In this document: piece after piece, positions 16,647 to 20,108 of the stretch
Layout: each line of letters opens with the position of its first letter
Numbering within the stretch: the stretch's first letter is position 1
Assembly (NCBI GenBank): GCA_021613535.1
Contig: CP075492.1
Span: forward strand, 10,726,001 to 10,790,000
DNA from: Adineta vaga
Lineage: Eukaryota > Animalia > Rotifera
Direction: 5' to 3'
DNA length: 64,000 bases
Translations under genes and position numbers: made by a program
The notes under the pieces: model-generated
What the model saw: the letters and a program-made list of their open reading frames with translations, nothing else
Told to the model about the DNA's origin: nothing
Databases searched by the model: none

Positions 16647-17085
16647 AAGATAATATATGTAATCTTGTTTTCGTATTTTGTGTATTTTCATTAAATAAAA
16701 AACTTGATTGTGTTTAATAATATAGATGGCAAAAGAAATGCAGAAAAATCATCGTTAATGTCTTAAAAATCTAACGAATACATTTAATAATGACATCTAT
16801 ATCACATCCATCGAATTATGTGAAAGAATGTTTGTTGTTGAGGATTAATAGTTGCATTTCAAAAAAATATGGTCGCGAGAAGCGATGAAAAACAGAACAC
16901 TTTTCGGGGATTTTTGTGTTTTCAAATCACTAACAACAGTACTCGACGCTGCGCAGAAAATTTTTCTTTGAAAGACTTGAATACACAATCCCTCTTTTCT
17001 CACTTCTTGTTTTTGTGCAGGTATTTCTATTACAAATTTTGTGTTACAAAAAGATCTAACAGAAATATAATCACCCGCAGTTAAT

Positions 17086-19235
17086 ATGAGTGAACCAAAA
17101 CCGCGTATCACACCTACCAAAACATCAACGGAACGACACGTCTTGCTCACAATTATTCACTTCTATGGGTCGATGCAAATATCGATGAAAACAACAACGA
17201 TTGTCAAAACACTTTGACACGTTTACGAGCTGTTGTCAACGATGTCAACTTATGCACACAACCAACAGACTGTATCCAGTTTCTCAACACCATCGGAGAT
17301 GAAAAAGCATTTGTCATTACTTCAGGATCTCTCGGTCAACATCTTGTTCCCGACATCCATGACATACCCAAGTTGAATAGTATCTATATCTTTTGTGGTG
17401 ACAAATCTCGACATGAACAATGGACGAAACAATGGATCAAAATCAAGGGCGTACATACCGATATTAAGGACATCTGCGATGCACTCCAAATGGATGTCAA
17501 ACAATACAATCAAGATTCGATTTCGATCAGTTTTGTTGGCCCCAGTGAAGCAACTAACAGCGAAAACTTGAATCAATTGGATCCAACATTTATGTATACT
17601 CAAATATTCAAAGACATTCTCCTCGAAATGAAACATGATCAAAAGGCTATCCAAGATTTAACAGAGCATTGTCGTGCTTTGTACATTGGAAATAAACATG
17701 AATTAGGTATTATCAAGGAGTTTGAACGCACTTATCGCACAGAACAAGCGATTTGGTGGTACACACGTCAATGCTTTACTTTTCAGATGCTTAATCGAGC
17801 CCTTCGAAATCTTGAATCAGATACAATCATCAAAATGGGCTTTTTCATGTGTGATCTGCACAAAAAAATTGTCGAATTACATCAACAACAGATCGATAGT
17901 TATGGCAAAGACTCCTTTCTAGTGTATCGAGGACAAGGTCTTTCAAACACAGATTTCGAGAAATTGATGAAAGTCAAAAATGGTCTGCTATCGTTCAACA
18001 ACTTTCTTTCCACCAGTAAAAAGCAAGAAGTATCTCTAGCATTTGCTAAAGGTTCATTAACTAATCCAAATATGGTTGGCATACTTTTTGTTATGTCGAT
18101 TGATCCTCGAGTCACAATAGTGCCATTCGCTTGTGTTGATACAGTTAGCTATTTCCAAACAGAAGCAGAAGTTCTATTCTCTATGCACACAGTATTCCGA
18201 GTGCATTCAATCAAACAATTGCAGAACAATAGCAGATTGTATGAAGTAGAACTTCAACTTACGGGTGATGATGATGAACAACTTCAGATACTCACTCAAC
18301 GTATTCGAACGGAGGCTGCCGGTGACACAGGGTTGAAACGACTGGGTAATTTATTACTCAAAATAGGTCATTTTAATCAGGCTGAAGAACTTTACAAAGC
18401 GCTGCTTGATCAGACATCTGACATGAATGACAAACAGCATTACTATCATCAACTTGGATGTGTCTATAATGATCAAGGTGATTATAAAAAAGCTATTGAA
18501 TACTACGACAAGGCACTTGAAATTGAACAAAAAACTCTTCCTTCTAATCATCCTTCATTGGCTACTTCTTACAGTAACATCGGATTGGTGTATAGCAACA
18601 TGGGAGAGTATTCGAAAGCACTTTCATACTACGACAAGGCACTTGAAATTGAACAAAAAACTCTTCCTTCTAATCATCCTGATTTGGCTACTTCTTACAA
18701 TAACATCGGATCGGTGTATAGCAAGATGGGAGAGTATTCGAAAGCACTTTCATACTACGACAAGGCACTTGAAATTCGAGAAAAATCTCTTCCTTCTAAT
18801 CATCCTTCATTGGCTACTTCTTACAGTAACATCGGATTGGTGTATAGCAACATGGGAGAGTATTCGAAAGCACTTTCATACTACGACAAGGCACTTGAAA
18901 TTCGAGAAAAATCTCTTCCTTCTAATCATCCTGATTTGGCTACTTCTTACAATAACATCGGATTGGTGTATAGCAACATGGGAGAGTATTCGAAAGCACT
19001 TTCATACTACGACAAGGCACTTGAAATTCGAGAAAAATCTCTTCCTTCTAATCATCCTTCATTGGCTACTTCTTACAGTAACATCGGATTGGTGTATAGC
19101 AAGATGGGAGAGTATTCGAAAGCACTTTCATATTTCGAACGAGCTCTTCATATTATGGAGAGTGCACTACCTGCTAATCATCCTCATATCAAAATCGTGA
19201 AAGGACATATCGAAGTTGTCAAACATAAACTCTAA
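17086..19235 (+). CDS. Receiver-like domain + ADP-ribosyltransferase (R-S-ExE) + TPR array protein, intronless CDS; apparent 1-bp deletion near 17137
   Basis: N-terminal NYSLLWVDANID...FVITSGSLG...SIYIFC; ART motifs WWYT..LNRALR, VYRG (17922), FLSTS (18003), EAEVLF (18162); 42-aa TPR-like repeats. ATG 17086 is out of frame with the long ORF by one base. Confidence 0.85.
18501..19130 (+). repeat. Five near-identical 126-bp tandem units encoding 42-aa TPR repeats
   Basis: TACTACGACAAGGCACTTGAAATT recurs at 18501, 18627, 18753, 18879 and 19005. Confidence 0.97.
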
Positions 19236-20108
19236 ATTTCACTAGCTGAATAAAGTATCTTTTACCACTTATTGCAAAACATGCCTACTCGAGCATATGA
19301 GTGCAAAGAAATGCTGAGTAATAGAAATACAAAAGATATGGTCGTTTCATAAGATAGTACACAGAGATGTTATTGAACTTCATAGACACGATAGTATTTT
19401 TATGATTTAAAAGTTCCCTCTATATAGCTGGCAAATAGAATGACCAGAAATGAACTTGAACTGGAAAATAAGGTGATTCTCAAAGTTACAGGTGAATGCT
19501 TTTTACATATTAATAGAGTATTACAGGATAAATAGATCAAGCTCTATTCGAAACAAAACTATAGTATGCTTATAATCGAAAGGTCGTAAAATGTATTTTC
19601 TTGTATCAATCGCATATGATCCTTTAATAATTTAGAGATAGACGCTGCAAACTGAAGGGACTTGTAGAGGAAATACTACTTCAAGTTTCAAAAATAGAAA
19701 ATCAAGTTGCATATTGAAATAGTGATAAATGTTATATTTGTATTTCTCATATGCACTTTGTAGAGTTCGTTTCTCAATTGTTACACATCTCTGACTCTGA
19801 GTCATGTAATCATAAATGTATGGGAAGAAATTCTCTGCCATGTGGATGGATTCGATATTTACAATTGATTAGATTGTCGTATAAGATACTGCAAATTTAG
19901 TCCATTAATTGAACTATGTACCTCAAAGAAAACAAAGCAGAAAGTGTATAAGTGAACTTTGCTTCGACATCACTTGTTTTGTTTTTATTTATAGCCTTAC
20001 TTTTTATTCGAATGGTTTATCACGTCTGTTCTTTTTCTTTTCGTTATATCTTCTGTTATCAGTATTCTAAACTATCTTGAGAGTTTACACTTTCATCATC
20101 GCTCTATT

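Follow-up and report, generated by a model that had tools for sequence, protein, structure and literature searches.

Homogenised tetratricopeptide repeats with variable codons on the predicted binding face in a receiver-like–ADP-ribosyltransferase gene from Adineta vaga, a bdelloid rotifer

The 64,000-nucleotide stretch of Adineta vaga DNA analysed here (C3:10,726,001-10,790,000 of a six-contig, chromosome-scale assembly of 100.8 Mb; in the following, the window) carries a gene, here termed gene A, that ends in five nearly identical 126-bp units, each encoding a 42-residue tetratricopeptide repeat (TPR). Our data suggest that this array probably evolves as a repeat of high internal conservation (HIC), with selection favouring diverse ligand-binding surfaces on a protein that joins a receiver-like domain, an ADP-ribosyltransferase (ART) domain and the TPR array. 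Two observations carry this reading: the units have been homogenised down to their synonymous sites, both within the array and, by exchange, with related arrays elsewhere on the chromosome, and the few codons that still differ between units are concentrated on what is predicted to be the concave, ligand-binding face of the repeat. The array is located as follows.

18501 to 19130, + strand: array A, five high-identity TPR units U1-U5 of 126 bp (42 aa) each, defined by Tandem Repeats Finder (TRF), translation and an AlphaFold2 (AF2) model.

By TRF, the array extends over 18500-19132 with a period of 126, 5.0 copies, 95% matches and zero indels, and is the sole such array within the window. Read in the frame closed by the stop codon 19233-19235, its units occupy 18501-18626, 18627-18752, 18753-18878, 18879-19004 and 19005-19130, all of them in frame and free of stops and indels, with a mean identity between units of 95.4% at the nucleotide and 90% at the amino-acid level. 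An initial annotation of the window had reported that the five units show no synonymous differences at all, and this is accurate: the 10 variable nucleotide columns fall into seven codons (unit codons 9, 10, 12, 19, 25, 29 and 33), every one of which changes the amino acid, i.e. E/R (GAA/CGA), Q/E, T/S, S/D (TCA/GAT), S/N (AGT/AAT), L/S and N/K. The TCA/GAT pair contains a third-position change that is synonymous on a Ser background. The unit haplotypes, which had also been listed exactly, are EQKT-S-S-L-N for U1, EQKT-D-N-S-K for U2, REKS-S-S-L-N for U3, REKS-D-N-L-N for U4 and REKS-S-S-L-K for U5. Since all four combinations occur both for EQKT/REKS with S/D and for S/D with N/K, the initial annotation had called for recombination between units, conversion or recurrent mutation; the Hudson-Kaplan minimum amounts to two recombination events inside the 126-bp unit, and the multi-base alleles concerned recur in three arrays, as described below.

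Where these codons lie in the folded repeat can be judged from an AF2 model of the TPR region (mean predicted local distance difference test score, pLDDT, 91; predicted TM-score, pTM, 0.81), in which helices of 16 and 18 residues alternate; helix A is predicted to span unit positions 18-33, and helix B positions 37-42 together with positions 1-12 of the next unit. In a HMMER alignment to consensus TPR structures, unit positions 22, 25, 29, 32, 33 and 19 correspond to TPR positions 2, 5, 9, 12, 13 and 33, respectively. TPR positions 2, 5, 9, 12, 13, 33 and 34 are the most variable ones of the motif and all lie on its concave face (Magliery and Regan, PMC1261162); positions 2, 5, 6, 9, 12 and 13 touch the ligand in co-crystals of HOP TPR1 and TPR2A (PMC1261162), and in 42-residue TPRs the groove is lined by helix A (PMC5642895). 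With a concave set of seven unit positions (21 nucleotides) defined beforehand, four of the seven concave codons vary in array A as compared with three of the 35 others (Fisher P=0.009), and six of the 10 variable nucleotides fall within those 21 (P=0.0015). The suggestion that most variable residues sit on the first helix of the repeat is thus just true, with codons 19, 25, 29 and 33 in helix A, but codons 9, 10 and 12 belong to helix B. For the four helix-A codons the proposed location at the binding groove agrees with published work, as they correspond to TPR positions 33, 5, 9 and 13 of the concave face.

Array A does not stand alone. A DNA search of the same genome returned at least 92 matching places, with arrays at no fewer than 40 loci, and the two closest matches are paralogues. 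Paralogue B lies 33 kb upstream (L031:2810-5338; G000:C3:10709809-10712337), is 95% identical and has eight units; paralogue C lies 575 kb away on the same chromosome, is 90% identical and has 12 units (12.4 copies; array L032:4475-6041). Unit number among these paralogues is therefore 5, 8 and 12. When the units are aligned across paralogues, a check that the initial annotation had proposed, B and C are found to vary at the same codons and with the same alleles as A: over all 25 units, amino-acid variation is restricted to codons 3, 9, 10, 12, 19, 25, 29, 32, 33 and 37, which include five of the seven concave and five of the 35 other positions (P=0.005). The TCA/GAT pair at codon 19 and the AGT/AAT pair at codon 25 occur in all three arrays; codon 9 has the alleles CGA, GAA and CAA across arrays, with the multi-base pair GAA/CGA recurring in each of them.

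Synonymous variants behave differently, being mostly specific to one array and close to fixation in it: AAG occupies codon 4 in five of five A units vs one of eight B units, and 11 of 12 C units have CTA/GAG as their codons 6 and 7. This pattern of array-specific, near-fixed synonymous variants indicates concerted evolution. Moreover, the scaffolds of A and B differ by only about one synonymous change per unit, where the synonymous divergence (dS) of the non-repeat part, 0.18, would predict about five (P=0.04), and the nearest neighbours of units A1, A3 and A5 include B units at two to three differences. Outside the repeats, B and C resemble each other unevenly: over the receiver and ART regions their identity alternates between 0.83 and 0.99 per 150 nt, a mosaic that is typical of gene conversion between paralogues and suggests that conversion is not confined to the repeats. 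Taken together, the closeness of A and B, the B units among the nearest neighbours of A units and the B/C mosaic show that exchange between paralogues occurs. The arrays thus display the concerted evolution and the exchange of repeats within and between paralogues that characterize HIC repeats, and by the four-gamete test at least two recombination events are required within each array and at least seven over the 25 units. The array of paralogue C has an additional level of organization: units C3, C7 and C10 are identical or 1 nt apart, and C4, C9 and C11 form a second near-identical set, i.e. multi-unit blocks have been duplicated inside the array to give higher-order repeats.

For array A, the combination of multi-base alleles shared with B and C and of zero synonymous variation in the scaffold implies that the differences between its units are not recent point mutations. 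Its alleles must have been retained or re-introduced by recombination or conversion with breakpoints inside units.

The question therefore is whether the concave codons stay variable because this is selected. We estimated omega, the ratio of nonsynonymous to synonymous change, separately for concave and remaining codons, using no recombination-aware codon model for this or the following site tests. Concave codons have an omega of 12 in A, 10.8 in B and 1.5 in C; of 19 arrays, namely A, B, C and 16 further ones from this genome, 15 have a value above 1 (sign test P=0.02). For the remaining codons, omega is 1.8 in A, 0.82 in B and 0.18 in C, and lies at 0.2-0.8 in 18 of the 19. The value of 1.8 in array A is accounted for by codons 9, 10 and 12 together with a near-zero dS. 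When segregating nonsynonymous concave sites are compared with synonymous sites, P is 0.025 for A, 0.003 for B, 0.38 for C and 0.004 for A and B together; a test that counts allele events gives P=0.02 for A, P=0.0017 for A+B and P=0.08 for A+B+C. The diversifying selection that the initial annotation had invoked is thus significant in A, in B and in both combined, but not in C or in the pool of all three, i.e. only in the two most homogenised arrays. In these two, nonsynonymous diversity per site (pN) at concave codons is 0.18-0.22 while synonymous diversity (pS) is about 0.02; across arrays, diversity at concave positions is 0.16-0.44 whether the pS of the scaffold is 0.016 or 0.45. Homogenisation therefore strips variation from the scaffold and spares that of the binding face, which argues for, without proving, selection that keeps the units different.

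The same positions are variable beyond A, B and C. In the 16 further arrays, internal nucleotide identity is 72-92% and diversity peaks at positions 9, 19, 22, 29, 32 and 33; among 25 homologous proteins, most of which belong to other Adineta species, variability within a protein is greatest at positions 9, 32, 29, 19 and 33, and concave positions are more diverse than the rest (Mann-Whitney P=0.0017). Nucleotide identity exceeds amino-acid identity in 19 of 19 arrays. Among these, only A, B and C fall under the HIC definition of repeats that are more than 85% identical over at least 100 residues (Dyrka et al. 2014), with amino-acid identities among units of 0.90, 0.90 and 0.92 over 210, 336 and 504 residues, respectively, and nucleotide identities of 0.94-0.95. 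That variation is limited to a few positions of the ligand-binding surface, a further trait of HIC repeats, also applies here, as far as sequence and a predicted binding face can tell. The family as a whole is large, with more than 3,157 matching database proteins, mostly from A. steineri, A. ricciae, Rotaria and metagenomes; once a mis-modelled version of paralogue B (P0001) is set aside, identity to the nearest proteins in the ART part is 59-67%.

These data can be joined in a scheme in which the five units would form the sensor-like C-terminal domain of a three-part protein consisting of a receiver fold, a C3-type ART and a 42-residue TPR solenoid. Unequal crossing-over and short-tract conversion, acting among the units of the array as well as between it and its counterparts at a distance of 33 kb and 575 kb, would homogenise the scaffold including its synonymous sites; the same exchanges would alter unit number (to 5, 8 and 12) and re-assort segments smaller than a unit. 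A few codons would nevertheless keep several old alleles in every array, namely those of the helix-A face (TPR positions 2, 5, 9, 12, 13 and 33) and of the end of helix B, such that the set of side chains presented on the concave groove may differ from unit to unit. This preserved diversity is most likely due to selection for diverse or novel ligand-binding surfaces, and it would then be selection rather than relaxed constraint that maintains it.

Several points, however, weigh against this interpretation. Taken by itself, the lack of synonymous change in array A is weak evidence: synonymous sites make up just 28 of the 126 in a unit (22%), and the chance of finding nonsynonymous changes only is P=0.17 if seven codon events are counted, 0.08 if 10 nucleotide events are counted and 0.09-0.15 once transition bias is considered, so that array A alone gives no significance (P 0.09-0.17). 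Codons 9, 10 and 12, in the last turn of helix B, lie outside the binding set defined a priori. Neutrality is rejected neither for array C nor in the pooled event test of A+B+C, and a McDonald–Kreitman-like comparison of shared and private alleles ([9,1] vs [10,9]) gives a merely suggestive P=0.098. In the less homogenised arrays, omega at concave codons is about 1-1.7, which would fit relaxed constraint equally well. Finally, the arrays are related and exchange sequence, so that the tests are not independent of each other.

All this leaves some room, though we consider it unlikely, for neutral turnover of a young array shaped by duplication and conversion, in which the variable positions would simply be unconstrained surface and diversity as such would not be selected. 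The near-neutral omega at concave codons in most older arrays and the non-significant results for array C and the pooled test are in line with such a process; TPR positions 2, 5, 9, 12 and 13 are the least constrained ones in TPRs generally, and the alternation of S-S and D-N every two units in array A is compatible with block duplication. Conversion, however, should erase nonsynonymous and synonymous variation alike, yet A and B have kept the concave diversity typical of the family (P=0.0017-0.004). Likewise, block duplication of old units would have carried along synonymous differences between S-type and D-type units, and in array A there are none.

A different kind of concern is that the array might be an artefact of assembly, i.e. 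collapsed, expanded or mis-ordered, or a chimera of two haplotypes or of paralogues A and B. High-identity arrays need long reads to be assembled (PMC13449251), and this very assembly contains a demonstrable 1-base error 1.4 kb upstream of the array. The public read data, from 24 runs, consist of Logan k=31 contigs, whose pieces inside the array are 70-76 nt long and fit several places, too short to span a unit junction; within the limits set by this ambiguous placement, four runs report no alternative letters inside 18501-19130. A contig joint in these data (17767>18663) was taken as spurious, one of its sides being just 22 nt. Against an artefact stand the six-contig, chromosome-scale nature of the assembly, the array length of 630 bp, which is far below any long-read length, the perfect frame of the units without indels, and the recurrence of the same regime in three separate arrays, so that we regard this explanation as very improbable.

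The 1-base error just mentioned relates to a last alternative, that of a decaying pseudogene in which repeat variation would be mere drift. In the assembly, the frame that begins with the ATG at 17086, which is aligned with the starts of paralogues B and C, ends after 43 codons, and the long open reading frame (ORF) at 17214-19235 (673 aa) has no ATG. The sequence near 17137 is one base short in comparison with both B and C. Contigs from four public runs were placed on 17000-19400, and those of the three runs that cover the site all contain an extra, frame-keeping base, at depths of 19.8/19.8 (X1), 33.8/33.8 (X2) and 35.3/35.3 (X12). Two haplotype versions of the site are visible in the contigs, and the likeliest source of the deficit is a mistake of assembly or polishing where the haplotypes differ by several bases. 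Outside the repeats, omega of gene A relative to its paralogues is 0.22-0.25, i.e. this part of the gene is under purifying selection. The extra base in all contigs and the low omega together argue that gene A is intact and the frameshift false; with its ART motifs preserved, its array free of stops and indels and the same pattern present in the intact paralogues B and C, the pseudogene reading was rejected and has the least likelihood of all, even though gene A is represented by zero annotated proteins in a database of 5.8 billion.

Allowing for the missing base, gene A and its remaining features are arranged as follows.

17086 to 19235, + strand: gene A, a single exon of about 716 codons encoding receiver-like domain, ADP-ribosyltransferase and TPR array.
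17135 to 17140, + strand: apparent 1-base deletion with frameshift at codon 18, from paralogue alignment and read-derived contigs.
17148 to 17519, + strand: N-terminal alpha/beta domain with a predicted CheY-like receiver fold, coordinates transferred from paralogue B residues 22-145.
17613 to 18266, + strand: putative mono-ADP-ribosyltransferase domain, C3/HopU1/Vis-like, with R, S-T-S and E-x-E motifs.
18324 to 18500, + strand: two divergent leading TPR-like repeats, not homogenised and outside the TRF array.
19131 to 19235, + strand: divergent C-terminal capping repeat and stop codon.

The two pieces of the frame-broken gene A were analysed apart, and paralogue B served for the study of its N-terminus. 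For the non-repeat part of B, AF2 predicts (pLDDT 79, pTM 0.73) a receiver-like fold, a helical linker and an ART fold. In VIA-align comparisons the modelled N-terminal domain resembles many receiver domains (Z about 12, root-mean-square deviation 2.4-2.9 over about 113 residues); a Pfam search of N-terminal pieces gave zero families for it, and an atlas search returned solely unnamed rotifer clusters, every score being below 0.9. At the end of strand 3, where receivers have the phospho-acceptor Asp, this domain (paralogue B residues 22-145) appears, from inspection of the sequence, to have Ser or Thr, which suggests a pseudo-receiver.

The ART domain gives weak Pfam matches that are nonetheless above the gathering score (PF03496, E=8.9e-6; PF01129, E=6.8e-5), and its model matches Vis and C3 structures (Foldseek best E=6.5e-7, others weaker; VIA Z 12.5-13.4). 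Among 30 homologues the Y-R-G and S-T-S motifs do not vary at all, and conservation of E360 and E362 reaches at least 90%. With the predicted ART fold and the Arg, Ser-Thr-Ser and Glu-x-Glu motifs, it is a probable member of the R-S-E clade (C3/ART2/HopU1-like).

The C-terminal half matches TPR_12 (E=7.7e-80) and TPR_10 (E=6.2e-75) in Pfam; period, Pfam families, structural matches to kinesin light chain and to PDB 4Y6C and the helices of the AF2 model all place it among the 42-residue TPRs (42PR; TPR_10/TPR_12, kinesin-light-chain type). In the TPR model, the leading repeats correspond to helices H26-38, H42-55 and H59-76 and to the first part of H79-96. Between A and B the capping repeat hardly differs (dS 0.047); in C it has diverged. 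Array A is part of one uninterrupted exon. Neither NACHT nor NB-ARC was found by Pfam in the N-terminal pieces of 359 and 160/117 aa, which matched ART families alone, and VIA-align fold comparison of the AF2 model of paralogue B gave no P-loop NTPase. Membership in the NOD-like receptors (NLRs) or, more generally, the signal transduction ATPases with numerous domains (STAND) was therefore rejected.

Gene models and read data offer some further observations on this locus. The NCBI model of paralogue B (I4U23_014176, protein P0001) retains only the first TPR unit, treats the other units as spliced out and joins the gene with an ORF downstream to which it is unrelated. With the array of B lost from its model in this way and gene A broken by the frameshift in the assembly, proteome-based surveys will under-count such arrays. 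In run X12 (as well as X17), the only contigs at 17138-17446 and 19104-19287 have paralogue-B-like letters at about twice the single-copy depth, and in X12 the neighbouring segments match gene A exactly; this may reflect gene conversion between A and B, with differences from one A. vaga lineage to another. Runs X1 and X2 have zero contigs on 19106-19400, i.e. on the C-terminal cap and 3′ flank, with the rest of the gene covered, which could be a filter effect or indicate a different 3′ end in those samples.

How does this arrangement compare with known systems? In fungal NLRs, TPR_10 repeats have an internal identity above 85%, polymorphic repeat numbers and positively selected concave sites, and such high-identity repeats are rare in Metazoa (0.8%; Dyrka et al. 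2014, PMC4986451). Paralogous HIC NLRs exchange repeats, and HIC NLRs have been reported from every domain of life and also from animals (Ament-Velasquez and Saupe 2026, PMC13449251). In the literature searched, a general remark on TPR family expansion was found (PMC3846280), but no paper that connects the TPR or ART families of bdelloids with hypervariable repeats homogenised within an array.

The closest counterparts are the HIC TPR arrays of Podospora anserina NLRs (e.g. Pa_2_10340), which are of the same 42-residue TPR_10 (PF13374) type; of the crystal structures of the P. anserina repeat (PDB 4Y6C/4Y6W), 4y6c matches the rotifer array with E=6.6e-23. Both sets of arrays combine unit identity above 85% with few variable concave helix-A positions, exchange within and between paralogues, and unit numbers that differ among related genes. 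Unlike the Podospora NLRs, however, the rotifer gene resides in an animal, has no NACHT or NB-ARC and carries its array behind a receiver-like domain and an ART; in Podospora, polymorphism of repeat number between alleles and strains has been established by PCR and long reads, whereas in the rotifer number differences are known between paralogues alone, and positive selection is less firmly supported than in Podospora. The parallel with fungal NLRs drawn in the initial annotation thus extends to repeat type, identity above 85%, concave hypervariability and exchange, but not to the protein, which is not an NLR.

Other systems share part of these features. According to the summary of Paoletti et al. 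2007 given in PMC13449251, the WD40 repeats of the Podospora HNWD proteins (HET-E, HET-D and HET-R) likewise evolve in concert with few hypervariable, specificity-determining positions, and PMC13449251 also describes loss, gain, shuffling and intergenic exchange of their repeats; as presented there, they differ in forming a beta-propeller rather than an alpha-solenoid as in the rotifer, in their architecture and in having an established role in allorecognition. The NB-ARC-TPR genes of Ectocarpus, which are candidate receptors with signs of positive selection, also use 126-nt, 42-aa modules as shufflable cassettes (Zambounis et al. 2012, PMC3341825), but with one exon per unit and exon shuffling, whereas the rotifer array is a single exon that appears to be re-assorted by crossing-over or conversion with breakpoints inside units and is not joined to an NB-ARC. 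Kinesin light chain TPRs (42PR; 7AI4, 3NF1, 3EDT and 3ZFW) are the best natural matches among solved structures (E=5e-39 to 1e-29) and share the 42-residue helix-A/helix-B geometry, in which helix A lines the cargo groove; their repeats, however, have diverged from each other, are conserved between species and show neither homogenisation nor hypervariable cassettes. By analogy, the rotifer arrays appear to share the repeat type and the evolutionary regime of the fungal HIC repeats, the new elements being the animal host, the non-NLR chassis and the uninterrupted exon.

Near-identical repeats with a few hypervariable contact positions are a hallmark of rapidly diversifying non-self receptors in fungi. 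With the arrays described here, a fungal-like repeat regime is encountered in an animal and on a different chassis, i.e. a receiver-like domain and an ART in place of a NOD module. If selection for diverse binding surfaces is the correct reading, ligand binding by the TPR solenoid may control the ART as an effector, and the system may serve recognition of non-self or in conflicts, i.e. act as an immune sensor. More tentatively, and with less than even likelihood, bdelloids would possess a large repertoire of intracellular sensor-effectors that lack an NLR ATPase and combine receiver-like, ART and hypervariable HIC TPR domains, whose specificities would be renewed by mitotic or ameiotic unequal exchange and by conversion, both inside paralogues and among clustered ones, in a manner convergent with fungal HIC NLRs. 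If so, an animal with little or no conventional sex could renew its recognition specificities, and should the arrays vary among haplotypes and clonal lines, candidate receptors, defined specificity codons and an assayable enzymatic output would be at hand, and the question of how a lineage with so little sex keeps pace with its pathogens would become testable.

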